Source of the DNA: Octopus bimaculoides
Lineage: Eukaryota
Direction: 5' to 3'
Length of the DNA: 64,000 nt
Assembly: GCF_001194135.2 (NCBI RefSeq)
Contig: NC_069005.1
Span: 14,201,556-14,265,555, forward strand
This document shows positions 40,103 through 63,278 of the stretch, in pieces. The position numbers and the translations under genes are program-made. Within the stretch, counting starts at the first letter, position 1; each line of letters starts with the position of its first letter. Below the pieces are notes generated by a model. The model ran no database searches. It was given only the letters and a program-made list of their open reading frames with translations, and had not been told where the DNA came from.

Positions 40103-40124
40103 TAACCCATAAAGTTTGTCAGAA

Positions 40125-43100
40125 ATGTCTGCAAACAAAAAGCGTGGTGTCAGTAGCCGTGTCTCAAAGGCTGAGCAAGCACTAAAGAGCAGCAGCGGTA
40201 ATGGCAGACCAGGAAGGTTGGTGGTAGAGTCTGGAGAAGATACTCCCAAGTCAGTTGAGAAATCTTCCTCAAAGTCTAGTGAAAGCATTGGAAATCAAAC
40301 CCCAAAGACCTCTGTGAATGCTGGAAAAGTTGTTCGTAAAGCTGGACGCCCTCGAAAGCATCGGGACGGTGATGGCAGTACACCAGCGACTTCCACAGCC
40401 CTACAGAACCCTGCCACTCTTTCTACCTCTGGTCCGCTGTCATCTGTTGGTGCCAAAAAAAGAGGCCGAAAAGCCAAGAATCCCGAATCTGCAGTTTCCA
40501 CTGGGAGGAAAAAGAGTATTAATAAACGTGCCCTTGAAATTGTGGACACTTCGAAAGCAGCAATGGAGAAGTTACAAAAGAAAAAACCCAAAGGAACAAA
40601 GTTGTTGGCCACAACAAAAAGTAAAAAAATAGGGAAAGTTTACACAGAAAAGGGAATTCTTAGCAAAGTAAAGAAGGTTTGTCCAACAGAAAGCAAAGGC
40701 GCTAACAAGAAAGCTGCCAAAGAACTACAGTCTGTAAATAATAGTAAACTAAAATCTTCAACTTTGCATAAAGTTCTCAAAGGTTCTAAAACAAAGAAAT
40801 TGTTTTCAAACTCTGAAACTGATACCAGTGAAAGCAGCAAAATGCCAAAATCCAAAAAACTAGGGCACAGCAAAGACAATAGCGGGACTGGGCTTAAAAA
40901 GGTTAAGCTAAAAACTTTGATTAAGATGAAAAAATCTGGTAGTCAGCCAGGTAGGAAACGCAAAATACCTCAAGCTGAGTGTGAAGATTCTAAAAAGAAA
41001 ACCAAAGCCAAAAAAATTGTCCAAAGTACTCCGGCCATTATCTCGAAACGGAAGTGCAAAAGTAAAAAAAATGACAATCCAGAAAGTGAGAACAAAGGCC
41101 AGTTGGTGATAAAGAAAAAACCAGGTCCTGTGAAAGGAAGTAAAAAGGCTGTCCCAAAGACTTCTGCACTTGATACTAGTAGTAAAGTACAGAAACTGAA
41201 GAAATCGTTATCGGATAAATTAAAAATTAAGAAATATAAGAAAGTGAAAGATAACCTGTCTCCGCACAGACTTAGTGGCGCTGAAAATGTGGTCCAGCAA
41301 TCCAATAAGTTTGAATCAGCCGATAATAGTAGAATATGTGAAACAAAAGATATTCGCTTCTCAAAGACATCTCCACTTGAGTCAGGTACACCTACAAATG
41401 GAGCAGAAAGTTCTAGAAGACTGGTGAAAACTACACTGGACAGTCATAAATTGAATGTTCAGGGTGTCTATGAAAGTGAAATATCTGATTGTTTCAAACA
41501 AGGAGTTAATGAGGATTCTATCAACAATGTCGTAGAACTGGCTGACATGTCTAACAGTGAAGGAATCAATACTGTCTTGGTGCCGAACAAGACCAAATTC
41601 CTCAACTCTTCGGTGACTGATGTTACGGACAGCGAAGATGTAAATACACAAAGCACAATAGACAGTGAGGATGTCACTACGCGAAGTACTCTCGATAGTG
41701 AAGATGTTAATACACAGAGCACCGTGGAAAGTGATCGAGTGACTACTCCTTGTACAGTTGATAGTGAGGCAGTCAATACTCCAGGTACTGTTGATAGTGA
41801 TCAGGTTAACACACCATATACCATAGATAGTGAAGATGTAAATACTCAGAGTACTGCAGACAGTGAGAGGATCAATACTCCTTGTACAGAAGAAAGTGAA
41901 AACGCCGTTCCTCCTCTTTCTGTTGACAGTGAGGAGGTGAACACCCCTTGCAGTGTCTTCAGTGAACAGGTGAACACCCCTTGCAGTGTCCTCAGTGAAC
42001 AGGTGAATACTTCCTGCAGTGTAGATAGTACAGAGGCTGCAATGCCAAGCTCAATAGAAAGTGAACGGATTAATACACCTTGTTCGATTGATGCTGACGA
42101 TCCCAGCAGTTGTGAACTGGTAGCTTCAGATGTGAAGGCTACTCATGTTGTCAGTTCCCAGAGTCTAGAATACAACACTGTGGAATCTTCGAAAACCCCA
42201 GTTAATCTGAAGGTGGAAGATAATGTGTGTTCGAATCAGATGTTAAGTAGTCTTGAACAGAAGTCACCAGCAGCAAGTGTGGAACCATCAAGTTTACTTG
42301 ATAACCAATCCAAAGAAGTGATAAATACGGGTAGACTGAGTTCACTTCCAAACTCCGAAAGTTCTGAACAAAACCAAGCTGGCTGCCAGTCATTTCCCAA
42401 CCAGTCCAAAGTTGAAACGGATGATGACATTTATACCAAACCAGCAAGCTCTGTGGAAATGAGTCCTTTACTTTTGGAACTTTCCCCTGCTGAAAGTGAG
42501 GTAAACGTAGTTGATGATGTCGAGGTTGTTGATCCCACCAACACATCACCAATTGAACCAGATCTGTCTACAGACAATCAAACAGATCATGGCTCAGATT
42601 TGATTAGCAGTCCAGTTTCACACACGGCAAAAGCTTCCGAGCAGTTGCTGGAAATGCAACATTCTGCAGAAGAAAATCATGGAGATTGTTCTACGTTTTC
42701 AGCACTGAAGGAGAAAAATTGCGATGACTCTTCGGGGTTTACTGTTCAGGCAAAACTTGTGTCTTCAAATCCGTCAGTTGAATTAGCTTCAGATGCCACC
42801 AGTTCTATGCCAGTGTTTTCATCGACTGTTAGCAAAGATCTTCAAACAACAAATGTTGCAGCCGTATCTGTTCCCTCTGCAAAGTCTGAGGATGAAGCTT
42901 ACAGATCTAAATGCTGCACCAATGATGTTGGAAGTCTTGCAGAACCAGTGCAAAAAGACCTTGCTATTGCTACAGAAGATAGAAAAGAATCTGTGACTGA
43001 TGAAGTGTTGGAAAAGTCAGCATGTGTCAATATGCCTGGCTTGGTGTCTGTCATCTCAAGACCTTCCATTATTTCTTCAAGTAAAACAGACATTATTAAA

Positions 43101-46100
43101 CACCAGCAGCAAACTAACTCAGCTAATATACATAATTTACATGAAGATAACAAGAAACCATTTCAACCCCAGTTCCCTGTCAAAGACAAAAATATTTTTG
43201 CCTCGTTTGCTGAACTTGAACCCAAGCTTCACGAAAAGCCTCTGTCTGTAATCCGAGCAACAGCAAATCCAGAAGCTAGTGTTTCAGCTTCACTGGTGAT
43301 GGAGATGTTATCACCACCCTCATCTTCCACCTTCAAACTCTCTAACTGCACTTCTGTATTGAGCAAGATCTCGAAATGTAGCACCGATGTAGACACGTGT
43401 AGTTCTGATGTAAATAAATCAGCCACTAAAATACTGCAGGATATTTCTTCATCTGAAACTGTTCCTACCAAAATTACATCACCACCACCAGAAGCAATTT
43501 CTCATGGCTCTTCATTCTTTGAAAGTAAAATGAATTATGTAAAGGCTACGGAGACGGAGACTTCAGCTTCACTACCCAGAGCTGGTGAGGAATGCAGTAA
43601 AATCACATTGTCACACACTTATTCGAAATTTGTTGAAGATTTGCCTGATCAGAGAAACATGCTGAAAGTTATCCCCCTTGAGCAACCTTCCTCTGGTGGT
43701 GAGCCACAACCTGCTTCACAAGCAACATCATTGTCACTTGGAACTAAACTGTCAGTAAACCAAAAGGATGATCAACCTCCAGCAACTGAATTAGATTCCA
43801 CATCTGATGAACAGAAAGTTGTTGAAAGCAATTTGAATACAAAAATACAATGGCAGCCAAATGCTGTAGCCATGTCTTCTGATGCCAAAGAGTTGGACCC
43901 TAACATAGCTTCTGTGATCAAATGTAGTGACGATGCCAACAAGTCTGATCCAATTAAACTGTTCAAAGAGCAAATCATTAAGAATGTACTTCCTAACGAA
44001 GTATTTCAAATGAAGACTTTACCCAGTAAAGATAATTTGTATTCTCCTTCCAGTATTGTTGCCACTGTTGCATCTAAAATTGACTTGAGTTTGAACACTG
44101 CAGCATGCTCTGCTAGCTTTAAAGATGAACATGGTTTACCCTTGGATACAGCTTCTGTCAAACTTGATCCAGACAAGCCTATGGATAATGACATTTTCAA
44201 AGTTAATTCTGATTTACAAAAAGATACAGTTAATCTTAAAGATGATGCTGATACGCAGTCAGATTCAGCTAGTCCTAAAACAGATCCTTATATGCAATCA
44301 GATGAGGGTAGCCCTCAAGTCAACTCTAATGTGCTATCAAATGAAGATAGCCCCAAAGATGAGCCTGATACAATACTGAATGTAGATGGCTCCAAAGACG
44401 AGCCTGATACTCTATCAAATTTATATGTCCCCCGAAATGAGTCCAACACATTATCAAATGTTGATAGCCCCAAAGATGAACCCAATGCATTATCAAATAT
44501 AGAAAGTACTAGATATGAGCCTGGTGTATTATTAAATGTAGGTCACCCCAAAGTTGAGCTCAATACATTATCAGATCTAAGTATCCCTAAAGATGGACCT
44601 GATACATTGTCAAATGTAGATAGCCCTAAAGATGTACCCAATGCATTATCAAATGAAGATAGCCCCAAAGAAGAGCCTAATACATTAATAAGTATGGGTA
44701 GCCCCAAAGATGAGCCCAATATATTAATGAATATTGATAGCCACAACGTTGAACCTAGTAAATTAATAAATGTGGGTAGCCCCCAAAATGAGCCAGATAC
44801 ATTACCCAATGTAGGTAGTCCCAAAGTTGAACATGACACGTTGATAAATGTCAGTAGCCCCAATGATGAACCCACTACATTATCGAATGTAGATAGCCCC
44901 AAAGTTGAACCTGACATAGTAGTAAATGTCAGTAGCCCCCAAAATGAGAACAATACATTATCAAATATAGGTAACCCCAATGATGAGCTCAATACATCGA
45001 TAAATGTAGGTAGCCCCAATGATGAGCCCAATACAGTAATAAATGCAGGTAGCCCCAAAGGTGAGCCCAATACATTATCAGTTGGTGGAAGCCCTAGAGA
45101 TGAGTCCAATGCATTAATAAATGTTGGAAGCCCTGGAGATGAACCCAGTGCATTATCAATTGTTGGTAGCCCTAGAGACGAGTCCAATGCATTAATAAAT
45201 GTTGGTAGCCCTAGAGACGAGTCCAATGCATTAATAAATGTTGGTAGCCCTAGAGATGAGCCCAATACATTAATAACTGTAAGTAGCCCCAAAGGTGAGC
45301 CTGATAAATTATCAGTTGTTGGTAGCCCTAGAGATGAGTCCAATACATTAGTAAATCTAAGTAGTCCCAAAGATGAGCCCAATACATTATCAATTGTTGG
45401 TAGCCCTAAAGATGAGCCCGATGCATTAATAAGTGTAGGTAGCCCTACAGATGAGCCCAATACATTGTCAGTTGTTGGTAGCCCCAAAGATGGACATGAT
45501 ACATTAATCAATGCAGATAGTCCCAAAGATAAGTCCGATATATTATCAAATATAAATAGCCCCAAAGATGAGCCCAATGCAATATCAAATACAGACAGCC
45601 CCAAAGATAAGTCCAATACATTAATAAATGAAGGTAGTCTTAAAGATGTACCTGATATACAATCAGATACAACATGCCCCGAAATTGACCTCAATATGCA
45701 GTTTGATGTAACTAACTCCCAAGTTGATGCTAATATGCAATCAGATTCTGAATGTTCTATGGATGTGCAGTTGAATGCAACTAATTCCGAAGTTGATCCC
45801 AATTTGCAGTCGGACTCAGCTTGCTCTAGAGTTGAACTTGACATGCAGTTGGAAGTAACTAACCCTGCAGCTAATCCCATTATGCCACTGTCTACAGCAG
45901 AGGATTTGCCAATGGATTCAGCAGTTTCCAAAGCTGATGGTGGCTCTCAGTTGACTATGACTGCTGTTGTTAAAGTCAATTCTGCTACTTATCAAGACAA
46001 ATGCAGTCCTGACGAGAAGTCAGATGTTATTGACAACACAAACACTCCTCCTTCTGCATCTTGTGAGCCATCTTCCCCTGTGGTTGCTTCAGAGAATAAA

Positions 46101-49100
46101 TCTTTTCAGCAGAATCAGTCTCCGGTCGCTGGAGATGAAGCAGAGCAGTTCATCAAAACATCAAAGCCTTCGGATCAATGCCAACCATGTGAAGTGAATG
46201 ATAGTCCTCAGTCCTCTTCATTATTTCCACCTCATCAAACTTCATCATCGTCATCATCAGTATCATCTGTAATACTTCCATCATCATCATCATCATCCTC
46301 ATCCTCCTCCTCATCATCATCATCCTCATCGGCATTGTCATTATCATTGCCATCAACATCATCATCAGAGCTACTGTCTCATGAACAATTACCTAGCTTA
46401 GCTCTATCAGATATGCCTTCTCAAGAACAGAAACTACCATTGGTTATAAGGTTTAATGATTCATCTAATACATGTGATGTGAAAAATGACGAGGAGAAAG
46501 GGAAACCTAGTGTCAAGGCAGAGGTAACCAGTGTGGTGGCAGAGAAGACGTACGTAGAAACGAAGGTCAGTGAAGAAAATGCAGTTAGTTCTGTAGAGTC
46601 TTTAAATGACTCAAACCTAAATGGCATTCCTGACACTATAGGCAATGGCAATGAACCTCCTCCTGGTATCAAGACTTCCAGCCTTGATCCTTCATCAAAT
46701 CTCAGCTGTAGTAGTGATAGTAGTAATAGTAACAGCAAGACGTCTGCTATGGGGACTGTTACTTCATCATCTATGGCCAGTCCATCATTGTCTAAATCTG
46801 ATGAGGCTTCTGTGATACATAGTGAAACCTCCTCCGATAGTGCAGTACCTTCCTATAAAAAGAACCCTGGTGCCTTGATACAAAATCCAACAAACACAAC
46901 AGAATCTTTGGCTGCATTTTCTTTGAATTCTGCCCCAGTTAAAAAGGAGAGTCTTACTGTCCCCACTATCAAGATAAAAGTCGAGTCTGAAGCAACTCCA
47001 TCAGACACTTTGTCCCATTTGTCAACCTCCATGGTGATAGCTCCTGCCGCTGCTCAAAGAATTCTCTCGTTAGCAACTCTGGCCAACAAAGTCACTCTGA
47101 AATCCAGCCATGCCACACCAGCCATTAAGAAATCAAAATCAGTAGATTCTGAAAGTGGCAGTTTGTTACTGAAAGGAGAGGCAGATGGTAACCTGGTGGA
47201 AAGTGAAGATAACAGTGAAAGTGTGGATGAAAGAGTTACCGGTTCAAAGAGCAGTGCTCCAGCTCCCCATAGGGTTGTGAGTGGAGATTTAACCGACCAT
47301 TCGAAGAAGGCTACAGTTGCCATTCCTTCAGATAAAGTTCCTGAAAGAGATGTTTCTGGCTCATCAACATCTACAGAATCTCCAAACATTGAGAAGCCTC
47401 TACTTAGCAAAGATGAGGAAAAACTCTCCAGTGTTGAATTAGGGAAAACCCCTACAGCTACCGACTTGGACAAAGGCTCTGCAGAAAACACTAACAACAG
47501 TTGCCTGAAATCTCCAAACTCCACTTCTAACTCGCAGCTTGTTTGTGATCCTTCTCTGAAAGAGAAGGACAGTGAAGAGCAAAGAAAAGGTTCTAGTTGT
47601 CAGGTTACTGTTGACCTGTCCGTCTCGGTCAGCATCGAGCCCCCTCCTACTCCTTATCCTCCCCTCTCCATATCTCCAAAGGCATCTCATAAGAACATAG
47701 AGATAAACGAGAGAACTGAAATGAGGTCATCCCCCCCTGATGATAAATCCAGCTCCTTAGCTGCAGTTAAAAAGCCAGATGTGGAAATAGTCAAACCACA
47801 GCTGAAGCCATCATTTGCTATCTTTGACAGCTGCCTTGTGTGCATAATTTGCCGGAAGATGTGCAAAAGTAAGAAATCTTTCCAGGCACATGTGTGGTGG
47901 CATTTTCATGCTTGTAGTCGGATGTGCACCCATTGTCTGCCTCCTCCAGAACCCATCAGTATTAATAACCAACACAAACTTCAGCTGAATAAGTGCCCTT
48001 ATGTGATGGATGTTATGGTTAAAATATGTCGCACTCTTAAAAAGATACGTCAGGCAAAGCTGCAGTCTGGCAAAGACCAGGTTGAGCGTGAAAAAACATT
48101 TGCAGAGGAGGAAACTGACACCGAGAGCGTGGATCTAGACTACGACTTGAACAACGGTGGTAGTGGTGGCGGTGGGGAAAACAGTAGCAGCAAGATGGCG
48201 GATCTGTCACTGACCGCAGCACAAGTTGACAGCAGCCAGTCAAACAACCAGAAATCCAATGCAACCGATGACAACAGTATATTTGCTCCAGCAAACGTTG
48301 AGTATCTCAGGTCTCTCTACTCCAGTGGTAGTAACAGCAAAAAACGGACTAAAAAGTCTTCTTCCAGTGGCCCGAACCACCACCACCACCACCACCATCA
48401 CCACCACCACCACCATAGTTCGTCCTCGTCGTCTTCTTCGTCCACCTCCTCATCTGTGGTAAACTCTTCAGTGTCGTCTTCCCACAAGAAAGGGGGTTTC
48501 TATGTCTGCGGTTTTCAGTACTGTACTTACTCCTGTATGAATTGTCTTCAGTTCCGTCTGCATCTACAGCAGTGTCATAACTTTGAAACTGTGTTTCCTT
48601 GCTACCATTGTGGCCAGCTGAACTATTCAAAAGATGACCTCATCAAACACATGTACAATCATTCAAATGCGCGAGATTTTCTGCTATTTCGATGTTGGTT
48701 CCCTCGGTGTCGATTTGGTACAAACATGCTTCAGGAGTTTCACGAACACAACAACATCTTCCATGTCGGTGAGTTAGTGTTTACCTGCTTCTATTGCAAT
48801 ACGGAGTTCCCCGAACTATCTGAACTGCTCAACCATCTCCAGTCTAATTTGCTGAAATTTGTACAATGTCCTCACTGCACTGTGAAGGACCGAAACCGAA
48901 GGACTGTTTTGAACCACATATCTACCGAACACCCACTGAAACCAAAGCAAATTGTGGTCACCTGCCAAGTTGTATGCAAAAAGAAGCAAACTGTCTCCCC
49001 TGATGCTAGTGAGATACTGCACAATCAGCATCTTAAACTAAACCAGTCTCTGTCCGAAGAACGAATACTGGAATGTATTAAATGTGGCCTGATCTGTCGT

Positions 49101-51424
49101 AACATAGCAACATTACGGAAACACTCCCGCGTCTGCCTCCGAGACGCTCTTTCTAAGAAAACATTCAGCTCACCAAGAGAGAACAATTTAACTATGATCT
49201 ACTCTTGTCAATGGTGTAGTTTCCCAGCAGCCTCTGATACAATGCTTTTCCAGCACACTGTTGACCAGCATCCGGGCAAGAATGCCAATTTTGAGCAGAT
49301 TGAGCTGAAGGCACTTGACTCAGGATATGGTGAATATGAAAACCTCTCTAGAATGTCGTCTTGGCTCGAAACAACCAAGAGCGAAGCTATCATCTGCCCT
49401 TACTGCAAAGTTGGCTTTGATGATGAACTCCAGTGGAGTGAACACATGGAGCATGAACACAACCACGAAGAGCATATAGTCAAAGAAGAAGATGATGATG
49501 ATGACGACGATGAGGATGGCCATTTATCAAAGTACCGATGTGATTTTTGTGAATTTAACGGTATTTCTGAAAAGGATCTCTTAGATCACCAGCAAATGAT
49601 GACTATATCCGAGGGTCCTGACGGGCTGCATAGAAGGGTTGTTGACCTCGCAAATGTAACACCAAAAGTGACAATGTTAACGGACACCAAGTTAACTGTG
49701 AGTAACGTTCAGTCATTCAAGAAGTTCAAGAGGTCACCAAGTAAAAAGATGAACAATGCATTCTTTAAGTGTTCTGGCTGCCACTTCCGGAGCTTGAGCA
49801 AGTGGCAATCATTGCGACACGTGAAGCATTGTTCCCTTGCAAAGCGACGCCTCTCAGAATATATGAAGAAAAGAGGGTCATTCGTAAGCCGAGATGAAGT
49901 GAAGGCAGATATGGACATATACAATTTCCCAGAAAGCAACTCTGGATCATCGTCTTCGTCGTCTGAGCGACTGAGTTTCACTGCCGCCAGTAGTGATGAG
50001 CTACGCAATCAAAAGAGTTCTCGAATGATGTCATACATGCGGGACAAACAGATGAACCTGATGGCCAAGGAAGGTATTATCGACTGCACAGACAGCGAGG
50101 GATACAAGTGTTCAATTTGTAAACATACTGGCAAAACAATGATAAACATTCGGCAGCATCTGTGGAAGACTCATCTGAAACTAAAACCCGTTCGTTGTCC
50201 TTGCTGTCCATTCACGTCCTGGAAGAACTACACCCTGGAAAAGCACAAGATCAGCAAGCATCATCATTCGCATCCCAACCTCTCTGATCAAGAGATGAAA
50301 TCGCTGGCTCAGAATCTCCAAGGAACCACTGATGGTCTCGTTGAATGTCAGCTCTGTTTCTACAAGAGCCCCAGTCCATATAAAGTACGAACACACCTCT
50401 GGCGAACGCACATGCACCTTGAAATGAAACAGTGTAGGTCCTGCTCTTATAAGTGTTGGTATTGGTACTTAATGAACATGCATCGACTGTCACGACACAA
50501 AATAAAGGTAGACCAGAATAGCACGAAATATCAGCAGCAGCAACAGCAGAAGAGTCAAAACGAAAACAAAAATATGCTCGAAGGTAATGGTGAATCCAAA
50601 ACCAATGACAAAAATTCGTGTAAATCAAATGATGGTGACAATGCTGTAATGTCTGACGAAGACATGAGTCAACTAGCTAAAGAGTTGATGGAGCGAAAGA
50701 CTGATAATAAATACGAATGCACTATATGTAAATATGAATGCACACGCATTATGATAATGAAAATTCATATCTGGAAGCGCCATTTGAATGTAAAACAACG
50801 CAAATGCCAATATTGTCCGTACACTTGCTGGCTAGAAACGCGTTTGGCTCAACATGTATGTCGGATTGTAGTAGCCAGTTCTTGTGATGTTAACTCCGAT
50901 GGTGGCGGCGGTGGTGATGGTGGTGCCACAGGGCCAATACAGGACTCCAAATCTCGGTGGGTGATTTCAAAAGCAGATGAACATGGTTGCAAGTTATACA
51001 TTAATAAATCAAAGCGTCCACACAAAAGACTATCGTTTGAAGAGTTCGGAAGGCCGTGTCCAAAGAAATTCCGATCACTTTCCGAAGGCGGGGCTGCCAA
51101 TGGGAGTGCTGATAACAGTGTTGATGGCTTAGATGACTCTGAGAATACCTCGAGTTTTACTGCCACCTCAACTGTGGCAACTTTTGTCAAGGGAAGTAAG
51201 AACTTTTCTTGGATCCGACAGAAGCATGAGAAGTCTGTTTCTCAATCTTTCTTCCGCGTTAATGACAAAAAACTTTTTGCACGCACCACAGACCGTTTGA
51301 ACCAGTTGGAAATTTATACGTGTGTTTTCTGTAGCTATAAGTCCTGGAATATGGAGGCAATGTGTCACCATACTTACAAACATAAGCTACAGTGTGGTTA
51401 CTGCTTGTTCAGAGCCTACAGCCG
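40125..51424 (+). CDS. Giant coding exon of a very large multi-zinc-finger nuclear protein (AT-hook/Lys-rich N-terminus, two tandem peptide-repeat arrays, poly-Ser, poly-His, ~19 C2H2/C2HC fingers); continues into a downstream exon
   Basis: Stop-free frame of ~11.3 kb. First ATG at 40125 (MSANKKR), just after a possible acceptor TTTGTCAG (AG 40121-40122). Ends at consensus donor CG|GTAAGT (GT 51425-51426, phase 2) in the middle of a finger (LQCGYCLFRAYSR). Many C-x2/4-C-x12-H-x3/4-H/C motifs between 47841 and 51424. Confidence 0.93.
41628..42089 (+). repeat. Coding tandem repeat, 14 x 33 bp (11 aa, consensus DSE[D/Q]VNTP[C/S][T/S]V)
   Basis: Units read from the translation: DSEDVNTQSTI, DSEDVTTRSTL, DSEDVNTQSTV, ESDRVTTPCTV ... 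ESERINTPCSI; the span is exactly 14x33 nt. Confidence 0.92.
44271..45635 (+). repeat. Coding tandem repeat, 35 x 39 bp (13 aa, consensus SP[K/R]DEPN[T/A]L[S/I]NVG), with more diverged units continuing to ~45870
   Basis: Units from SPKTDPYMQSDEG to SPKDKSNTLINEG keep exact 13-aa register; SPRDESNALINVG occurs three times identically at the protein level. Confidence 0.95.
46241..46367 (+). repeat. Coding (TCA/TCC)n poly-serine tract
   Basis: TSSSSSSVSSVILPSSSSSSSSSSSSSSSSSALSLSLPSTSSS in frame. Confidence 0.9.
48378..48416 (+). repeat. Coding (CAC/CAT)13 poly-histidine tract flanked by poly-Ser
   Basis: 13 consecutive His codons in frame. Confidence 0.95.
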
Positions 51425-54400
51425 GTAAGTAAAACGTTTTAGCTTGTTTTAATTTAATCAATACATCTCTCACTTTCTCTCTCTAATTTTGCACAGCAAT
51501 CTAGTTATACGCTTTAGTTACTGAACCTTACCTTTGACAGCTATATGTTGTTTTCAAACATTTATGCACATATGTTTAACCCATTAGCATTCAGATTATT
51601 TTGTCAAATATGTTTATTCACATTGTTTTGAATTAATCATGCAATTATCTTGTAGCTTTGACTGTTTGATGGTGTGATTGTTTATTTTTTGAATGTAGCA
51701 TTGATGCAAGAGGCAGGATCTGGCCAGTTTGAACAGAAAAAAAACTGGTAGAATATTCTAGATATAGCTGGTTTTAAATTCTCTAACCCTTTGGCATTTG
51801 TATTATTTTGTCAAAAGTAATTCTTATTTATTCACATTGTTTTGAATTAATCATGCATTATCTTGTAACTTTGAGATTTTGATGAGGTAACTGTTTAGAA
51901 TGACATTGTTGGGTTAGTGTGAGAAGCCAGATCTGGCCAGTTTGAACATAAGAGGCAGAATATTTGGGCTGGGTATGGCCAGTTTAAATGCTAAAAGGTA
52001 GTTCAAAGAAATGACCATTACTATATTCTCTTGACCATTTGTCATGTTCTCCTTAAATTAGTGCAATAAATGAATCGATTGCTTGGCTTATGATAAATGG
52101 TCCCAATTGTGTTTAGTTGAAGGAGAAATGGGAATTGTGGGCACACATGCCTATCCCAGAGGCATTAGCAATATAAGTGAAATAATTTTCACTGTGATGA
52201 GAAACAAGATGGTACTCATTTTTACTAGCAGATGATGTCCTGTACAGCACATAAGCAAGCTACTATTAACTTGTTTGGATGAAGAGAAGCTAAGCCATCG
52301 ACTTTTACGGCTCAACTGGGGTCCATATAAGATTTTGTTGTTAAAATTTATACGTAGTAAATTAATTGTACTTCTACAATAAACAAAATATTTTCACAAT
52401 TCTTTTATGCAATTCCTAATAATATTTAATCATAAAAATATAGTGGGATTTTCTAGACATTGAATAATTATGAGGGATTCCACTCTACTTCCTGAGTGAA
52501 ATCGGAATCAAAGAAGCCAAAAATAGTTAAGAACTACTGCTTTAACCCTTTAGCATTCGGAGTATTCTGTCACATGTAATGCTTTTTCATTCACGTTGTG
52601 TTTAAGTAATCATGCTTTATCTCATAGCTTTGAAATTTTGATGATGTGATTGTATATTTTTAGAGTAGCATTGAAAGGTAAGTGTGATAAGCTGCATCTG
52701 ACTGGTTAGAACATAAAACAGGAAACCTATTTGGGCCAGATGTGGCTCAGGTTAAATAAATGTGGGTCGGGTGGGAATATAGAAGCTGTAAAAGAAACTT
52801 GTTGAAGCGGCAGCACATCTTGTTGGGTATTTGTTGAAACATGTGAGTGAAATGTTGCCAATTTGATGATATTGATTGAGTCTGGTTTCTATCAGCCTGT
52901 TTGATACCAGCCCATTTGAAACTGCCTCTAAGTTCTGTGATAAACACTTTCTGTTTTAATGTGATCTCAAACCTTTCATCAAAGTTTCATATTTATGTTC
53001 CAAACATCAACTTAGTAATGACAAGAATTTTCAAAATTAATTGTAATAGTGAAGCCAGTGCAAGTCAATAGAAATATGATAACTAGTGCCAAAAAATATC
53101 TTTACTAACATTAGCAAAACCAGTGGGTTTTCTATGCTATTCCTTGTGTAAACCCAATTTACAGTTTAGAAATAACTAACATTAATTGTATGGCTTTTAA
53201 ACATCTTGTTGTCTCCCTTTATGCGCTGAGTTTCTTTCAGTGATGTGTTTCCTTGGGCCACCAGACACTGATGTATGGCTTCAGTACTGTTTAACTGATC
53301 TAAGATGAATCTATTCCTGGATAGGATACCAGCCTATAGCAAGTAACATCCTCAGACAAACTTGTAGCAATTCCTGACGGCTATAAGGTCTATAGAATTC
53401 TTGTGCTATGTTCAGAAACACAACTAAGTTTTTGTATCTATTATGATTTGTCTTACACCTAGTCACTTGACCAATGTGTTTACACAACCCTTAAATAACA
53501 ATTTCTTTAACCAAACATGAAATAGGGTTAGATTGACCACACAGTAGAACTAAAACTCACAGTCCAGGAACAAATCATCTTGTATTTTATTCATCCATTT
53601 TCCTCTTTCACATTGTCATCATTGTCATTTGACATCCACTCTTCCATGCTTGCACAGGTCAGAGTTTCTTTTTTTTCTTCTTCTTTGAGACAGCTTTTCT
53701 ATGGCCAGATGCTCTTCCTGTTGCTAACCTCACCTGTTCCCAAACCTGATAATATTTCCTCGTGGAAGACTGGAAACAAACATCACCAGTTGTTTGTTGG
53801 TGATACACTTTTACGATCATAAAATGATGTCACGGCAAGATCATACACACACACACATACATAATGAGCTTCTTCCAGATTCCATCAACTAGATGCATTC
53901 ACAAGGACATGGGACCCTGACAGGTGCTACTAATCTGCATCAGAGTAGACCTGGGAAAAATAGTGGCTAAGAAACAGACCCACATACCTCAAAACCTTAG
54001 AACTTCTGACACCAGTGCCCCACTACCAGATGCAGTTTAAAACCATACCCAATAGACTTAATTGTTAATGCTAAGTGACTAGTGAGTTATGGTTGTAGAA
54101 GTGAAATAGCACAAATGGAATAATGGCTACTTTGAGGTGCAATTAGAAGCATGGTCATCTTGCAAGTGATGGATATGGAATTCAAATTCTCTCAATGGTT
54201 CTGTTCTTTTTTTGTCTCTAGTTTGTAATTTATAATATCTGAGAAAAGACTTCTCTGTACCCTGTCAACATCAAGTACTGCATCCATTTCATTCTTAATA
54301 TCCCAGTTTGTATGGTTGTAAGTAGATACCAGAGAGTAAATTCATTCAACTCTACAGCTTGTGAGTGACATAAACAACCGTTTTATTAGTTTTAGGTTCT

Positions 54401-54548
54401 GGGTATAGGTTCTCTTGTAGCCCTGATCCATGAATAGATTGTGCTCCACAATGGAATCATATTTCAGTATAGATATCATGGAATATGGTACCATTTATGT
54501 GTGTGTGTGTGTGTGTGTGTACACACCTGTGCTTATTCCTCTATTATA

Positions 54549-55835
54549 TTAGGTTGTCAAGAAAGTTCTTGCAGTTTTTAACTTTCAAATTCAGATCCAC
54601 ATATCTTGGCTCAAACAAAGCTTTATTAATTGAAATAAACACCATCAGGATCAACCCACTTTTGCCAACACGAAACAAGTTTATTTACGCCAGTCGCATA
54701 AAGATCTTGCATTCTGGTGGCGATGAAGTCATTGAAAGCGTGTTTGGCATCGTCTTAGTTTTTGAAGCATTTCTCATGCAGGAAGTTGTCGAGATGCTTG
54801 AAAAAGTGGTAGTCAGTAGGCAAGAGGTCTGGTGAGTATGGCGGATGAGGCAGAGTTTCGTAGCCCAATTCATTCAACTTCTGCAGGGTCAGTTGTGCGA
54901 TATGCAACCGAGCGTTGTCGTGGAGAAGAATTGGTCCTTTTCTATTGACTAATGCTGGCTGTTGTCGGATTTTCCTATGCATTTCATCCATTTGCTGACA
55001 GTACTTCGCCATAGTGGTTTCGCCTGGATCCAAAAAGCTTTGATGGATGAGACCGGCCGCAGACCACCAAACAGTTGCCATTACCTTCTTTTGGAGCAAC
55101 TTTGGCTTCGGGAAGTGCCGTGGGGCTTCATCAGTGTCCAACCACTGAGCTGAGTGTCGCCAGTTGTCGTAAAGAATCCACTTTTCATCGCAAGTCACAA
55201 TCCGGTCAAGAAACGGGTTGTTCTTGTTGTGTAAAAGAAGGGAAGACGACACTNNNNNNNNNNNNNNNNNNNNNNNNNNNNNNNNNNNNNNNNNNCGTGT
55301 GGCACCCATTTCTCAAGTATTTTTGTTTATCCAATCTCTTTCAAGTGGTTCGAAATTATCGTGTACATTACGTTTAATTCAGAAGCAAGCTCTTGAACAG
55401 TTGTGCGTGGATTGGCTTCCACTAAGGCTCGTAGTTGATTGTTGTCAACATCTGATGGCCGACCACTACCCTTATCATTTTCAAGACTCTTGTCACCGCT
55501 ACGGAATTTCTTGAACCACCATTGTGCTGTTCGTTCATTAGTGGTTCCTGGGCCAAATGCATTGTTGATATCACAAGCTGTTTCAGCAGCTTTTTGGCCT
55601 AGCTTGAACTGGAATAAAAAAATTGTGTAAATTTGCTTTTTGTCCATGTTGTATTCAACGTTCCTGAAAAAATGGCCTAATTACTCAAAAAGAAAAAGAG
55701 TAACACGATTAGGTAGAGCGAAAAACGGCTTTAAAATGATATATACAGTCAAAGTAATTTAGTGAAAATTAATTTGAAAATACATCATTTAAAACCAAAA
55801 TTAAAAATTCTGCAAGAACTTTCTTGACAACCTCA
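54549..55835 (-). mobile_element. Full-length but defective mariner (DD34D, Hsmar1/cecropia-like) DNA transposon
   Basis: TIRs TTAGGTTGTCAAGAAAGTTCTTGCAG (54549) and CTGCAAGAACTTTCTTGACAACCTCA (ends 55835), TA on both sides, ~1.29 kb long including a gap. Confidence 0.95.
54626..55647 (-). pseudogene. Mariner transposase pseudogene
   Basis: MDKKQIYTIFLFQFK...WVPH...TCDEKW...HDNAR...[13 protein letters not shown]...VYFN-stop. In-frame nonsense codons at 55327-55329 and 54755-54757, small in-frame deletions, and a 42-N gap. Confidence 0.92.
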
Positions 55836-56342
55836 TACTTTATCCTTCAACACCTGGCATAAAACTCTCTCTATCTCTCTCTAATCAAATCCCACTCTGT
55901 CAAGAAGACTTTCTTTGTCTTGTCTTTACTTTGTGCTGCAATTTATTATACCTCACCAGTGCCAGTGTCGTGAAAAATGCACCCAGTACACAGTGTAAAG
56001 CAGTTGGTTTTAAGAAGGGTATCAAGCTATAGAAACCATGCCAAAGCTGACATTGAGGCCTGACTCAGCTCTGCAGCTCATTAAATCCCATCATACAATC
56101 CAAAATATCACAAACAGACATTAAACAATTATCATGATGATGATGTATAATAAAAACCTGAGTCTTAGACAACTAGTGTTGATCTGCAGAGTCAGCAAAT
56201 AACCATTTAGTGAAGTTTGAAATTTTGGGAGTGTCACAGGAGAAGAGAATAGTGACATTTTAAGTTAAACCCTTGGTGGGAGAGTTTTGAATAAAACACC
56301 TGACGTTTCATCTCACCCACAACATACATATTTTACAGTATA

Positions 56343-56580
56343 CAGTAAATCCATTGCCATATCACAGTTCACCTATTGCGGTTTATTATTTTAGCTTATA
56401 TCGATTCCTCCATGGTATTGTTTTGCATTTATAATAAAATAAATATATACAATTATAAAAATATAGAATACTGATAAAAAAAAATTATGCAGTACAATAC
56501 CGTTTCTACTTCACAGATTTTCACCTATCTCTGGGAGGGGGTATTGAAACATAACACCCGTGATATTCGAAGGATTACTG
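56343..56580. mobile_element. Tigger/pogo-like MITE
   Basis: TA|CAGTAAATCC ... CGAAGGATTACTG|TA. Confidence 0.5.
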
Positions 56581-57374
56581 TACTCCACAGTTGTTAATCT
56601 GCTGAAATAACATGTAATTGTAGCAGTAAAAGCACAACCAACTCATCAGGCAGTATATTGTGTGGCCATGACATTATCATTGCACTGTATATACAGGTTT
56701 CCTGATCACTTGATAGCTACTGTATAAAAGCCAACACCGAGGTAGACACAATTGAGTTCTACAATTGGCATATAAGCAAATGCTTCTGAGTATTTTATCA
56801 ATTGTGATAAGCCCTTCGTATTTGTTGGCTCAGCAATTCTGGAGACTATATCTTGAAGTAATTCCCAGTAACTGAACAGTTTCTGAGGATTCCACAAGAT
56901 AAAAGAGATCTTAGATAAAATTTGATAAAAATTTATTTTACGTAATAAAAAAAGAATAAATAAATAAATAGAAGTTATTCTCCCATTTCAACATAACGTT
57001 TTACTTGTTTCAGTCCCTGGAGTATTGTCATATTGGAGCACTAACTTAGGAGTTTAGTCGATCAAATCGGCCCCAGTACTTTAAAAAAAAAAAATTTTAA
57101 GTGCATTATTTATTCTATTGGCTCATAAGCCAATCTGCTAAGTTACAAAGACATAAACAAACCTACACCGGTTAAGAAACAGATATGTACACACTATGTA
57201 TGTATGTATCTATCTGTGACGAGGTTTTATTTATTTATTTTTTTTTGTTACGTTCTCTTTTCAAAATAATTTCATTTAATCTCACTCTCTCATGAAAATT
57301 AATTATCCATTAAATAAAGACATGAGTTCCAGAACGGCTGGCCACACACATACGAAGTTATTTATCTCAAAGTG

Positions 57375-57751
57375 TTTACTCTTTACTCTTTTACTTGTTT
57401 CAGTCATTTGACTGCGGCCATGCTGGAGCACCGCCTTTAGTCGAGCAAATCAACCCCAGGACTTATTCTTTGGAAGCCTAGTATTTATTCTATCGGTTCT
57501 TTTTGCCGAACCGCTAAGTTACGGCGACGTAAACACACCACCATCGGTTGTCAAGCGATGGTGGGGGGACAAACATATACATATATACGACGGGCTTCTT
57601 TCAGTTTCCGTCTACCAAATCCACTCACAAGGTTTTGGTCGGCCCGAGGCTATAGTAGAAGACACTTGCCCAAGGTGCCATGCAATGGGACTGAACCCGG
57701 AACCGTGTGGTTGGTAAGCGAGCTACTTACCACACAGCCACTCCTGCGCCT
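57375..57751 (-). mobile_element. Young tRNA-derived SINE of a second family (head AGGCGCAGGAGTGGCTGTGTGGTAAG, CORE-like CCTTGGGCAAGTGTCTT, tail GAAACAAGTAAAAGAGTAAA)
   Basis: Complete copy with A/B-box-like head on the minus strand and CpGs retained. Confidence 0.85.
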
Positions 57752-58619
57752 TGTTTGTTGACTTTTTTTTACTACTATACATATTCATCTGATAAGAGAG
57801 AAGAAGGCATTTTGACTTTGAACTCTTGATTTTCCATAATTCGATTCGCCAAAAATAAACAGTCTTTTACGTCTAGACACCCTATGGGAAAGAAAATATA
57901 ATTTTAAGTAACGGAGAAAAAGAAATCTGTAGAAATACAGTCGGTTAGATGGTTCCAGGGAGATAACTCTGTAGCTTCTAACTTACTTTAATTAGCTTAG
58001 AAATGTGATGACGGATTCTGGTGCATTCTATAGTTTAAATTTGATAGCTTTGGATGTTATTTAAATGGCTAGTATGGTTCTTCCACGGAGTAATTACTTC
58101 AGTTTCAACACATTGTCCCAGGTCAAATCACTTGCCAGACAAGTACAACTCCGAAATTAGGAAATGTATTTCTGATCATTCGAGATACTTCGAAGTCATT
58201 TTTCATGACGCCTTCTCCAAAAGTGTGCTTTCGTCAATAACTAAAACTAGCGATATTGAAAGAATGTGGCGTTAACTTGTGAAACGACAATTAACTAATG
58301 CAGTTGTGGTTACGTAGGCGGAGTGTGCATATTAAATGTTGCCTTTCATATTATTTCTGATTGCACTCGGCAATGTTTATTCCCACAACCGAAACAAACG
58401 TGTTTTTAAGACAATCGTCCTCGATACGTCCCTCGACTGCCCTTACAACCAAAATCCATTACCCCCAAGTAGTATAACAATAATGAATTGCCATCGGCCA
58501 GTTTAAAAAAGCATTTATTAATCAAATAGGGCGAATATCTTGACAAGGGAAGCAACTCTTGGTTGGTTTGTAGATTACCCCCCCTCTCTCTGATTTATTA
58601 CTGTATGTACTACATATAC

Positions 58620-58810
58620 TCTTTTACTTGTTTTAGTCATTAGACTGCGGCCATGCTGGAGCACCGCCTTTAGTCGAGCAAATCGACCCCCAGGACTTAT
58701 TCTTTGTAAGCCTAGTACTTATTCTATCGGTTCTTTGGCCGAACCGCCAAGTTACGGGGATGTAAACACACCACCATCTGTTCTCAAGCGATGTTGGTGG
58801 GACAAACACA

Positions 58811-58858
<48 letters not shown>

Positions 58859-59117
58859 CGACGGGCTTCTTTCAGTTTACGTCTACCCAATCCGCTCACA
58901 AGGTTTTGGTCGCTCCGAGGCTAGAGTAGAAGACACTTGCCCGAGGTGCTACGCAGTGGGACTGAANNNNNNNNNNTTAGTCGAGCAAATCGACCCCCAG
59001 GACTTATTCTTTGTAAGCCTAGTACTTATTCTATCGGTTCTTTGGCCGAACCGCCAAGTTACGGGGATGTAAACACACCACCATCTGTTCTCAAGCGATG
59101 TTGGTGGGACAAACACA

Positions 59118-59165
<48 letters not shown>

Positions 59166-59331
59166 CGACGGGCTTCTTTCAGTTTACGTCTACCCAATCC
59201 GCTCACAAGGTTTTGGTCGCTCCGAGGCTAGAGTAGAAGACACTTGCCCGAGGTGCTACGCAGTGGGACTGAACCCGGAACCAAGTGGTTGGTAAGCGAG
59301 CTACTTACCCACACAGCCACTCCTGCGCCTA
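58620..59331 (-). mobile_element. Second-family SINE, one copy represented twice across a 10-N gap
   Basis: 58670-58966 and 58977-59273 are identical 297-bp stretches; the head is completed at 59331. Confidence 0.85.
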
Positions 59332-59612
59332 TATGTTCATGACCCTTTCTCCCACTCGCTTCCTCCAAAGATGTACTTTTGTGAATTACTAAAACTAGAT
59401 TGGAAGAATGTAAAGTTAACTTGTGAAACGAGGATTAATTAACGCAGTTGTGGTTACGTAGGCGGAGTGTGCATATTAAATGTTGCCTCCCACAGAACAT
59501 TCGTATAATTATTTGTAAAGGCAAGTGGCTTTGTGGTTAACGTGATTGCACTAATAATGTTTATTCCCTCCCGCCCCAACTGAAGCAAACAGGTGTTTTT
59601 GAAGCAATCCTC

Positions 59613-60400
59613 GGATCTTTGTGATTTGACGGGCAACACTTGTTTTCTTAACAAAACACTTTCAAACTTGGGACACTGGTAGAATGTGTCATATAAAACA
59701 ACTTCTTCTCTTAACCTTCTTAACAAAAAATTGTACATCGCAAGTTATTTCATGTTAAAGTTGTCGTATTTCTGTAATTTCAACCAATCACTGACGTCTA
59801 TTCAGCTGAATACAGTTACTGCTGTTCGGTGTCAAGTGTGTTATTCCCTGTATAATTATATCATTATTCCCTAGTAAGGGTTTAGGGGGTTAGGGTTAGG
59901 GTTCGGGTTTTATGGTTATGAGTTATAGGGTTAGAGTTAAGGTTATGGCAAAAATAATCATAACCCTAACCGTAATCCTAAAACTAACCCTAACTCTAAA
60001 ACCCGAACCCGAACCCTAACCCTAAAACCCTAAAGCTAAAACCAGTACAAACGTACGAACGATGTCATAAATAACAGTAACAAACGAAATATATACCACT
60101 GATAGTTGTTGTTGACAACGGATAGTTTTTGTTGACAAACAACGGCACTAATTTTATTCAAGGGAAAATATCCCCAGACACCGTTGTTTACATTCCACGG
60201 CGTAATTGTTTTCAACTCAATAGACGTCAGTGATTGGTTGAAATTACCGAAATACGACAATTTTTTACATGAAATAACTTAGAATACAAAATTTTTTATC
60301 TGTTCTATACCACAAAATATACAAGTATTCGAAGTTTGAAAGTGTTTCGGTACCAAAAACACTACATAAAAAAATGTTGCCCGTCAAATCACAAAGATCC
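59613..60400. mobile_element. Non-autonomous TIR element (MITE), Merlin-like, with internal head-to-head telomere-type repeats
   Basis: Perfect 26-bp TIR GGATCTTTGTGATTTGACGGGCAACA / TGTTGCCCGTCAAATCACAAAGATCC, imperfect arms extending ~200 bp, perfect 8-bp TSD CAATCCTC (59605-59612 and 60401-60408). Confidence 0.9.
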
Positions 60401-60704
60401 CAATCCTCAACTGCCCCTTACAGCCAAAATCCATTACTCCCAAGTGGTTTGCCTGCAAAAAAAACAATAAAATAAAAAAAAATTGAAATAAATAAAACCA
60501 ATGACATCGGCCAATTAAAAAAACTTTTGCGTTTATAAGTGACGTAGCATGTATCTCTTGACAAGGGATGCAACTCTTTATTGTGTTTGTATATATTATC
60601 TTTTCCTCTTTCTCTTCTCCCCAGCACTCGGTCTTTCTCTGTGGTTTGTTACTGCAAGCCTCTTTGTACTCAACTGACTAATAACAGGCAACACCAGAAC
60701 ATTT

Positions 60705-60876
60705 TATCTTTTATCTGGTTCAGTCATTAGACAAGGTAGTGCCCCATGCTGAAGAATTGACCCCAGTACTTTTTTTAAAGCCTAGTACTTATTCTCTTTC
60801 TTTTGTCAAACTAAGTTATGTGAACGTAAACAAACCAACACCGTTTGTCGAGCAGTGGTGGGGAGCAAAGACATAC

Positions 60877-60914
<38 letters not shown>

Positions 60915-61052
60915 GACAGGCTTCTTTCAGTTTGTCTACCAAATCGTTTCATAGTGCTATAGTAGAAGACACTTGCTCAAGATTCCTTGGGATGGGACTG
61001 AACCTGGCACCATGTGGTCGGGAAGCAAGCTTCATATCGCACAACCACGCTG
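60705..61052 (-). mobile_element. Older, degenerate copy of the second SINE family
   Basis: AAGCCTAGTACTTATTCT...ACGACAGGCTTCTTTCAGTTT...AGTAGAAGACACTTGCTCAAG motifs. Confidence 0.75.
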
Positions 61053-61519
61053 CTTTGAAAAGACAAAATAGAATTTACATTTGTATAATTCTTTTCTTTG
61101 CCATTGTGTTGGACAAAATAACTTAATTCTTAAAATTCTCATAAACATGGAAAACTTTATTAAGCCTTTGCTTGCATAATTAATTGTATCCTTCTTATAA
61201 CAGTATTAACGAGCAGGACCTGTGAATATTGCATGGAATTAATGGTAAACCTATTGGGTTATTCCTGAAAGCATTATCCAAAAATCCTGAAAGCGTAGCC
61301 TCTCTTGTATCTGTACAGATAGATAGTCGCTCATCTGCTACTCGTTGAAAAGTGAAAGAAATTGGAATACGATGATTACTTAATGCACTTTATATACTTT
61401 ATGCACAATTTTATAATAAATATTCACTCTTATTTTCCCATTTATAAGCCAAGGCAATAGATACACCTTTCAATTTGTGTACACCTTTCAATCCAATACT
61501 TCTTTGCAGACAACGTTCT

Positions 61520-61741
61520 TCATGCAAGCTCTCCCTCATCTTTTCCCTTGTTTGTCAGTGTTGATAACTTTAACTCTCTCATCAGATAATTTGAGAATGC
61601 AACATATAGCTGACCATGGCCGAATACAGGTTCAGCCAAGAACAGTCCTACTTTATCAAATGTCTGCCCTTGTGATTTATTGATAGTCATTGCATTTGAC
61701 AGGCAAACGGGAAACTGGTTTCTTACTAAAGTGAATGACAA
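61520..61741 (-). mobile_element. Helitron PIF1-like helicase C-terminal fragment
   Basis: [43 protein letters not shown] matches the hallmark [22 protein letters not shown] motif. Confidence 0.85.
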
Positions 61742-63016
61742 GTTTGGGATGCAAATGTGTTAAGTGATAGGTGATGTAAAAAAAAAAAAAAGTTCAGTAA
61801 AAAAAAAAAAATCACTTTTCACTATGCACTCACCATCACCACCTCCACCACTATGACCACCATCATCTCTCTCTTTCTCACTCTCTCTCTCTCTGCTTTT
61901 CTTTAATCTCACCATCAGAAATCAACCCTCTGCTAAAATTATATTTCTAACTCTTCTCTATATCACGACCTTCAACAAACTTTTTTAACCACATAATAAA
62001 TATTATGTTTACCCCTAGCACATGTCATGGACGCTTTTAATTCAAAACAATGTGTACAAATAAGCATGCTAAAGGGTTAAGGGGGCCTTCTTTATTATGT
62101 TTTAAATTAACAAAATCAAAGGGGTCCCCAAAACCTATTGACCCTGGGGCTTCACTAGATCTAAATTTGACTGGGTCCTGTATGTATGGATGTTAAGTTG
62201 AGGGGAGAGTAAAACTGTCTGGTTTCATTTCTCTATGTTCTGTATATTTTGCCTTTCATCTCTCAAAGTAATTCAAATCAATTTTAGTGAATTATGTAAC
62301 CCCAACCTTCTAAATGTTTGGCCTAATGTTTCACCAAAATAAGTCAATATTAGCGTGTGTGTGTNNNNNNNNNNNNNNNNNNNNNNNNNNNNNNNNNNNN
62401 NNNNNNNNNNNNNNNNNNNNNNNNNNNNNNNNNNNNNNNNNNNNNNNNNNNNNNNNNNNNNNNNNNNNNNNNNNNNNNNNNNNNNNNNNNNNNNNNNNNN
62501 NNNNNNNNNNNNNNNNNNNNNNNNNNNNNNNNNNNNNNNNNNNNNNNNNNNNNNNNNNNNNNNNNNNNNNNNNNNNNNNNNNNNNNNNNNNNNNNNNNNN
62601 NNNNNNNNNNNNNNNNNNNNNNNNNNNNNNNNNNNNNNNNNNNNNNNNNNNNNNNNNNNNNNNNNNNNNNNNNNNNNNNNNNNNNNNNNNNNNNNNNNNN
62701 NNNNNNNNNNNNNNNNNNNNNNNNNNNNNNNNNNNNNNNNNNNNNNNNNNNNNNNNNNNNNNNNNNNNNNNNNNNNNNNNNNNNNNNNNNNNNNNNNNNN
62801 NNNNNNNNNNNNNNNNNNNNNNNNNNNNNNNNNNNNNNNNNNNNNNNNNNNNNNNNNNNNNNNNNNNNNNNNNNNNNNNNNNNNNNNNNNNNNNNNNNNN
62901 NNNNNNNNNNNNNNNNNNNNNNNNNNNNNNNNNNNNNNNNNNNNNNNNNNNNNNNNNNNNNNNNNNNNNNNNNNNNNNNNNNNNNNNNNNNNNNNNATTT
63001 GTGTGTGTGTGTGTGT

Positions 63017-63278
63017 AATTTAGAGGAAAAAAAACCCCACTATTAATTAATTCAATAATGAAAAACGTTATTCACACCATCCAGAAAAATAAATATACTA
63101 TAAAAATTATATTCTAAAAATCAATAAAGTACATAAAACAGTAAATGTTACTATTTATTGTTTTATGTACTTTATTGATTTTTAGAATAAGGTTTTTATA
63201 GTATATTTATTTTTCTAGATGGTGTGAATATTGTTTTCCTTTATGGAATTAATTAATAGAGGTTTTTTTCTCTAAATT
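63017..63278. repeat. AT-rich palindrome/hairpin, ~128-bp arms with 6-nt loop (GTTACT); probable MITE in microsatellite
   Basis: AATTTAGAG...CAGTAAAT versus ATTTATTG...CTCTAAATT are reverse complements with few mismatches. Confidence 0.88.

Follow-up and report, generated by a model that had tools for sequence, protein, structure and literature searches.

A giant first coding exon in Octopus bimaculoides encodes a fast-evolving member of an unnamed lophotrochozoan C2H2 zinc-finger family

A 64,000-nucleotide stretch of the Octopus bimaculoides genome (contig NC_069005.1, positions 14,201,556–14,265,555 of the forward strand; hereafter the window, with coordinates counted from its first letter) contains on its plus strand a single stop-free frame of 3,770 codons (40116–51428). 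A preliminary description had seen in it one giant coding exon for a modular chromatin-type protein that could not be assigned to a known gene. Is this frame a real gene, to what family does its product belong, and what may that product do? We find that 40125–51424 is a real, selectively constrained protein-coding exon, the first and by far the largest of its gene. By its sequence the encoded protein can be placed in an unnamed lophotrochozoan family defined by a five-finger core, with both the complete core and the colinear fingers of that family present. The reading that we favour overall, and consider somewhat probable, is that of a real, expressed and constrained octopod gene for a protein of ~4,000 amino acids (aa); this protein would be one of a pair of paralogs that cephalopods have in a family of giant lophotrochozoan C2H2 proteins, and would serve as a chromatin-associated scaffold.

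The exon contains no in-frame stop, whereas its other two frames have 12–72 stops per 400 codons and the intron that flanks it ~75 per 1,190. The chance probability of such an open frame, computed with the exon's own base composition, is ~1e-103, and the GC content along the frame is 0.39–0.45 vs 0.23–0.37 around it; the single giant coding exon described before is thereby borne out. Translation of 40125–51425 gives 3,767 aa. A codon frame beginning at 40123 was rejected for its many stops, bases 40123–40124 preceding the true frame by two bases. The start was placed by comparison with the Argonauta hians ortholog P0002 (GAB1608034.1, 4,364 aa, labelled 'hypothetical protein'), which opens with the same residues (MSANKKRGVSS; MSANKKRGVSSRV) as the window protein. 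Because this Met1 matches the ATG at 40125 and an in-frame TAA lies upstream at 40110–40112, we take this ATG as the start codon and the exon as the first coding exon. The bounds given earlier, a plausible AG acceptor immediately upstream and a donor at 51425, were consistent with these results and the donor stands, but the reading frame starts at 40125, with an ATG of the exon's own.

The donor reads CG/GTAAGT at 51424/51425 (here and below a slash marks the splice site). The junction 51424^63899, which had been proposed for checking, is read through uninterrupted by two orthologs (...CGYCLFRAYSR/KKI(M/A)EHI...), namely P0001 (...CGYCLFRAYSR/KKIMEHIEEFHQ...) and P0002 (...AYSR/KKIAEHIGEFH...), and the tail of P0001 matches the exon that starts at 63899 in a tblastn comparison (E = 3e-11). 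P0001 comes from contig L001, an intron-less, transcript-like sequence of 3,851 nt assembled from run ERR12374249. Judging from the A. hians tail of 299 aa, the gene is expected to extend past the window by ~300 more residues with four more fingers. These results provide a firm gene model (start codon, donor, downstream exon) for a coding exon that is likely among the largest to be encountered in a cephalopod genome. A 552-base assembly gap (39503–40054) followed by (AT)20, up to 40095, lies directly upstream; because both adjoin the start codon, the promoter and 5' untranslated region (5'-UTR) are not resolved in the assembly. Third-position GC differs within the exon, being ~0.28–0.36 in the disordered part (to ~47300) and ~0.46–0.48 in the finger-encoding part.

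Constraint on the frame was examined against both orthologs. P0002 is colinear with the window protein from residue 1; identity is 71% over aa 1–344, falls to 25–31% in the middle and reaches 85% from residue 2543 onward. In the comparison with contig L001, the proportion of differing nonsynonymous sites (pN) was 0.054 in the five-finger core and 0.17 overall, and that of synonymous sites (pS) was ~0.88; pN and pS are given in place of dS, which was not computable with synonymous sites saturated. With pN this low, the finger region is evidently under strong purifying selection. The pS value (~0.88, 47826–51424 vs L001) lies above the 0.75 expected at saturation, which suggests that the window species and the L001 species differ in codon or GC3 preference.

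These comparisons bear on the possibility that the frame is non-functional and represents an assembly artefact, a pseudogene or a frame derived from repeats or transposons. The draft assembly of the window is interrupted by 13 N-runs, and tandem repeats form part of the frame and also keep open a 462-codon antisense frame (44543–45931, minus strand) inside the 39-nt repeat array. Set against this are the chance probability of the frame, the strong purifying selection and the colinear orthologs in two other cephalopods. Matches among the repeat copies are down to 71%, so these are not a collapsed artefact, and none of the N-runs falls inside the exon. We regard a non-functional frame as next to impossible. 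The antisense frame is most simply a by-product of a periodic repeat that lacks stops, and not a gene.

The protein is a member of the C2H2 zinc-finger superfamily by both motif and beta-beta-alpha fold. From residue 2570 on it has 19 finger starts (CxxC/Cx4C), of which 13 are canonical C2H2 and six variant (C2HC) or degenerate; the last is interrupted by the intron. The Pfam family zf-C2H2_4 scored 28.9 bits (cut-off 27) over aa 2768–3167. None of the linker strings TGEKP, TGExP, GEKP or TGxKP occurs in the window protein, the Pfam scan of it returned no KRAB, SCAN or BTB domain, and no Pfam family other than zinc-finger families matched. It is therefore outside the KRAB-type or tandem TGEKP poly-zinc-finger class, in agreement with the preliminary description, which had counted ~19 fingers without TGEKP linkers and had not taken the protein for a standard KRAB-like one. 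The same description had called the fingers widely spaced. This applies to those that are dispersed, but not to five that form a contiguous array nor to three pairs that are tandem doublets.

The contiguous five (aa 2795–2936, with a period of 27–31 residues) form the core of the family-defining module. All 30 invariant columns of a 19-member full-length alignment fall in the core stretch, with the pattern FYxCGFxxCxF...H...H / CxHCG / LYxC....CxFxTN / CxxC / NLLKFVxCPHC..K...R...LxHI...HPxKPRxIxV..Q..CxER, and window aa 2786–2965 hold every one of them. No Pfam family covers the core, and sequence searches of the PDB returned generic finger proteins only, plus His-tag matches to the poly-His run. 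AlphaFold2, suggested earlier for the finger region, was run on the core with a 44-sequence alignment and gave five beta-beta-alpha units with extra paired strands (124–129 with 159–164), at a predicted local distance difference test score (pLDDT) of 89.9 and a predicted template modelling score (pTM) of 0.77. In a Foldseek search of the PDB with the core, the arrays of CTCF, TFIIIA, PRDM9 and GLI were matched finger by finger only (template modelling (TM) scores 0.15–0.23, root-mean-square deviation ~16 Å). The core is thus predicted to fold as one compact domain, globally unlike DNA-wrapped arrays.

Finger 4 of the core is peculiar in its ligands. C103, C106 and H119 are kept in 80 of 80 sequences, yet in 58 of these the vicinity offers neither a second His nor a further Cys. 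The sole spare conserved ligand of the core is C166, which 78 of the 80 retain. C166 probably completes the fourth zinc site, which would staple the C-terminal extension, a beta-strand, to fingers 4 and 5. A compact single domain that has no Pfam model is unusual for C2H2 arrays, and the core offers a concrete target for structural work.

To what family does this protein belong? With the last 1,200 exon residues as query, an exhaustive phmmer search returned 581 proteins at E <= 1e-3 and 32 at E <= 1e-30. The complete core was found in 79 of the best 150 matches, and family members match the query in 6–14 separate stretches. The core by itself scored 226 bits against an Octopus paralog and 100–158 bits against bivalve, gastropod, brachiopod and nemertean members. 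A 19-sequence alignment keeps the finger columns along the whole C-terminal half. All 20 of the looked-up clusters that carry a source name are lophotrochozoan (molluscs, a brachiopod and a nemertean); they include cephalopods (Argonauta, Octopus, Sepia), bivalves (Argopecten, Mytilus, Pinctada, Sinanodonta, Mya, Mizuhopecten, Solemya), gastropods (Haliotis, Pomacea, Nucella, Batillaria, Lymnaea), the brachiopod Lingula and the nemertean Lineus. A word-indexed protein search found only P0001, and nothing with the core alignment as query. The sequences in that alignment are themselves part of the collection searched, so the negatives of this search are weak for such proteins.

The preliminary description's inability to name a known gene proved well founded. 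The closest entries are the A. hians 'hypothetical protein', 85% identical in its C-terminal 1,200 aa, and lophotrochozoan proteins labelled 'uncharacterized', and the homology search with the finger region that it had called for yields a family across molluscs, a brachiopod and a nemertean in which every named member is uncharacterized, hypothetical, unnamed or auto-named. We attach no meaning to the auto-names 'REST-like' (Mya) and 'serine-rich adhesin-like' (Octopus vulgaris), and the literature, searched by the names of six loci of the family, yielded no paper that mentions these loci. Among the relatives listed here, A. hians GAB1608034.1 is the sole true ortholog, with 85% identity in the finger region and the same Met1. 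Octopus sinensis LOC115224503, O. vulgaris CAI9740727, O. bimaculoides LOC106882551, Mizuhopecten LOC110465661, Haliotis LOC124131628, Lingula LOC106171239 and Lineus LOC135501493 are paralogs or orthologs of paralogs. The family (2,000–5,000 aa in total length) shares with the window protein the complete core, an isolated finger before the core, colinear C-terminal fingers and a long disordered N-terminal half; members other than the ortholog have 26–36% identity to it. The gene is thus no orphan: it is a fast-evolving paralog within a lophotrochozoan zinc-finger family that is old and widespread but completely unstudied. Long nuclear proteins with disordered stretches and many fingers are known as a kind; this family, with its compact five-finger domain, has no earlier description.

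In a neighbour-joining tree of the core, the window protein, A. hians and P0001 group together as sister to Octopus P0003 and Sepia P0004, with a third cephalopod clade further off. This topology indicates that the gene was duplicated within cephalopods and that the copy to which the window gene belongs then diverged fast. The core lies at residue ~2,800 of the window protein vs ~100–2,400 (commonly ~700–1,400) in other members. The basic head with AT-hook-like motifs is present only in the window protein and A. hians and absent from 22 other family members; the ~2,800-aa region that precedes the fingers is likewise absent from other members. By this distribution the AT-hook-like head and the giant acidic, repeat-bearing middle are lineage-specific gains of this cephalopod paralog, which supports the earlier term 'lineage-elaborated'.

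Along the protein the charge runs in three blocks (+66, -163 and +25). All three AT-hook-like motifs of the head are kept in A. hians, where the head is 71% identical. The middle region (aa 345–2540) has net charge -163 and pI 4.4, is 19–35% Ser plus Thr, contains almost no Cys or His and is rich in SP and CK2 sites. Its 11-aa repeat array is partly shared with A. hians (four motif copies there), whereas the 13-aa array motif was seen in the window protein only, being absent from both the A. hians ortholog and the paralogs. Within the disordered region, an island (aa 2279–2354) is 57% identical to A. hians vs 25–31% around it. The parts named in the preliminary description were all located, namely the basic head with AT-hook-like motifs, the low-complexity acidic S/T-rich stretch (~2,200 aa) with its two repeat arrays, and the poly-Ser and poly-His runs. 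Constrained ends that enclose a middle of 25–31% identity with species-specific arrays make the gene a good case for the study of how disordered regions expand in nuclear regulators.

The preliminary description had likened the architecture to WIZ, ZNF644, ZNF462 and ZNF518. In WIZ, ZNF644 and ZNF518, fingers without TGEKP linkers are widely spaced along chromatin-associated proteins that are long and for the most part disordered; these three left no Pfam or sequence signal in the searches run and are likened by description only. ZNF462 alone left a trace, and this did not withstand direct tests against a fish ZNF462. The ZNF462 finger families are the only specific Pfam families touched by the window protein, with PF23075 at 18.6–22.2 bits, PF23225 at 13.7–23.2 and PF23223 at 12.9, all below the cut-off of 27; its ortholog P0001 passes for PF23223 (28.5 bits, cut-off 27), and PF23225 matches 9 of 19 family members. 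ZNF462/ZFP462, the Weiss-Kruszka syndrome gene, also encodes a large nuclear protein of ~27 dispersed C2H2 fingers of the same flavour; the two proteins have a similar build of ~20–30 dispersed Y.C..C.[FY]...H....HP fingers, mostly within one very large exon (~5.5 kb in the fish locus L002), and BLASTP aligns one finger doublet together with the preceding acidic stretch (E = 1e-6). The window gene could on these grounds be a highly diverged ortholog of ZNF462/ZFP462 that recruits G9a/GLP–HP1 via its C-terminal fingers.

The comparison was made with ZNF462 of the fish Albula goreensis (P0200), which was fetched with a ZNF462 N-terminal sequence used as a probe only. About 2,000 aa were recovered from the locus, and this protein carries five ZNF462 Pfam families. 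With ZNF462 at ~2,500 aa, the comparison covers all but its last ~500 aa. A phmmer search with the ~2,000 aa of fish ZNF462 found neither the window protein nor the A. hians ortholog. The core profile met isolated single ZNF462 fingers only (5–19 bits). Alignment of the family C-terminal half to ZNF462 with hhalign gave E = 2.6e-20, weaker than 15 generic multi-finger controls (1e-27 to 1e-49), and the high PF23225 scores are sums of many weak fingers. ZNF462 has a finger at Met1, which the window protein lacks, and has neither an AT-hook head nor a 2,200-aa acidic region; the first ~2,000 aa of the fish protein do not contain the five-finger core, and no significant pairwise or colinear similarity was seen. 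Orthology to ZNF462 therefore appears very unlikely. Over the ~2,000 aa that were compared, the similarity is one of finger type only and does not support orthology, and sub-threshold 'ZNF462 finger' Pfam matches should not be taken for it. Consistently, ZFP462 has been called vertebrate-specific, with 27 fingers and a C-terminal part that binds G9a/GLP, WIZ and HP1 (10.1101/2021.06.28.449463). The fish locus itself (L002 10001–24002, CM040741.1) is annotated as two genes, of 846 aa and 1,127 aa, and apparent frame changes interrupt its large exon near L002 14002–14014 and 15600–15654; these are likely assembly or annotation errors.

The other likenesses are generic or architectural. Profile alignment extends over all five core fingers for CTCF ZF3-7 (E = 2e-25) and TFIIIA (E = 2e-22), with a beta-beta-alpha unit per finger. 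This is generic C2H2 similarity at 20–24% identity. The core lacks TGEKP-like linkers, is compact and, unlike CTCF and TFIIIA, has an extra conserved strand-plus-cysteine extension and a finger 4 without a second histidine. ZFAT, PATZ1, ZBTB24 and Drosophila ROW combine GRP-type minor-groove hooks with multiple C2H2 fingers and are far smaller, without a giant acidic middle. Beyond generic fingers (ZFAT finger, 36.7 bits), no sequence relationship of the window protein to such AT-hook plus C2H2 proteins was found.

What might a protein of this build do? From its fingers, AT-hook-like motifs, lysine/arginine clusters resembling nuclear localisation signals and non-signal-like N-terminus, we infer nuclear localisation and association with chromatin or DNA. 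In the arrangement that we envisage, the AT-hook head would hold the protein on AT-rich DNA, the C-terminal fingers would give specific contacts to DNA and/or partners, and the long acidic, phosphorylatable middle may act as a regulatable spacer or as a multivalent interaction region. To the family's plan, this paralog has added the basic head with its three AT-hook-like motifs, the ~2,200-aa acidic, fast-evolving repeat region and the poly-Ser/poly-His tracts. A secreted or surface protein of the serine-rich adhesin type is suggested solely by the auto-name of P0003 (Octopus vulgaris), 'serine-rich adhesin for platelets-like', and by serine-rich composition. That name evidently arose from low-complexity similarity; the N-terminus (MSANKKRGVSSRV) is polar and basic without a hydrophobic signal-peptide-like stretch, as judged by inspection with no predictor, and 19 intracellular-type zinc fingers together with the lysine/arginine clusters speak against it. 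We give the adhesin interpretation almost no credence.

Several points weigh against the chromatin-scaffold reading or soften its parts. Its functional side is drawn from motifs and composition only, and the Pfam scan gave no AT_hook match in the window protein. Expression of the window gene is read only from the contig of a related species. The taxonomic range was taken from 30 of the best 150 matches, 10 of them without a source name, and the tree of the core carries no support values. The proposed role of C166 follows from conservation logic. Core net charge across the family averages +2.8 and ranges from -9 to +14, and owing to this near-neutral charge and the compact predicted shape, classical major-groove DNA reading by the core is doubtful.

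The last point leads to the main live alternative, in which the protein acts chiefly as a scaffold for protein or RNA binding, the core and the doublets forming interaction surfaces and DNA being contacted only via the AT-hook head. Besides the near-neutral core charge, the prediction of the core as one rigid body (pTM 0.77) and the lack of a global match to DNA-bound arrays in the structural search are consistent with it. Between paralogs, conservation is poor at the base-contacting positions of the helices but is seen at framework and inter-finger residues, and weak matches to zf-C2H2_jaz and zf-met, finger types that bind double-stranded RNA, occur at the first finger. The profile matches of the core to the DNA-binding arrays of CTCF and TFIIIA over all five fingers argue the other way, as does the window's own core, which is basic (+5 to +7 by the bounds used; pI ~8.5–8.7), and AlphaFold run without DNA can over-pack fingers. 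We consider this alternative unlikely, and prefer a chromatin-associated scaffold.

A wider proposal, in our view rather improbable, is that the family represents a spiralian-specific class of chromatin regulators built around an undescribed rigid, cysteine-locked five-finger domain, or else the missing invertebrate counterpart of ZNF462. If the former were true, one cephalopod duplicate would have been rebuilt to ~4,000 aa with an AT-hook anchor and fast-evolving, phospho-regulatable acidic repeats, and the protein might organise AT-rich or repeat-rich chromatin in the repeat-laden cephalopod genomes. If the family were instead the invertebrate counterpart of ZNF462, the vertebrate-specific claim for that gene would be overturned. 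The features of the gene and its product are collected in Table 1.

Table 1. Features of the gene and of the window protein, in window coordinates
Feature	Nucleotides	Strand	Residues (aa)	Remarks
Putative acceptor, AG dinucleotide	40121..40122	+		tgtcag/AAATG; if used, would join only a 5'-UTR exon
Coding part of giant exon	40125..51424	+		11,300 nt; 3,766 codons + 2 bases; ends in phase 2 at the donor
Basic N-terminal region	40125..41156	+	1–344	net charge +66; pI 10.6; K+R 24–26%
AT-hook-like motif NGRPGR		+	26–31	in basic head
AT-hook-like motif KAGRPRKHR	40338–40364	+	72–80	in basic head
AT-hook-like motif KKRGRKAKN	40455–40481	+	111–119	in basic head
11-aa peptide repeat array	41627..42022	+		~12 copies; 33-nt unit; DSEDVNTQSTx type
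13-aa peptide repeat array	~44325..45689	+		~35 copies (~34–35); 39-nt unit; P[ND]TL[SI]NVGSPKDE; perfect register, no indels
Poly-Ser tract	46242..46367	+		follows the 13-aa array
Conserved island in disordered region	46959..47186	+	2279–2354	SUMO-consensus-like IKVE
First isolated C2H2 finger	47841..47909	+	2573–2595	family consensus CxxCx9FxxHxxxHxH; conserved in family
Poly-His tract	48376..48415	+		13 His, then poly-Ser; also at 5' end of contig L001
Family-defining module, five contiguous fingers + C-terminal extension	48480..49019	+	2786–2965	180 residues
Thirteen further fingers	49074..51424	+	2984–3767	singles, C2HC variants, three HxW(K/R)xH tandem doublets
Intron	51425..63898	+		12.5 kb; GTAAGT ... 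polypyrimidine tract ... AATAG; contains assembly gaps
Next coding exon, start	63899..64000	+		after ...tttgaatag; G/AAG AAG ATT; encodes KKIADHIDEFHQAPLKIVVDKNFKKYQMVFPSL to window end

An Rfam scan of the window found nothing, and a 137-codon open frame on the minus strand (24608–25021) is largely poly-Asn, poly-His and poly-Ile and is probably non-coding low-complexity sequence. Upstream of the gene, a 199-codon open frame on the plus strand (14754–15353) matches the reverse transcriptase family RVT_1 (E = 1.8e-18) and is interrupted by a gap at 15583–15961; it looks like a retroelement remnant.

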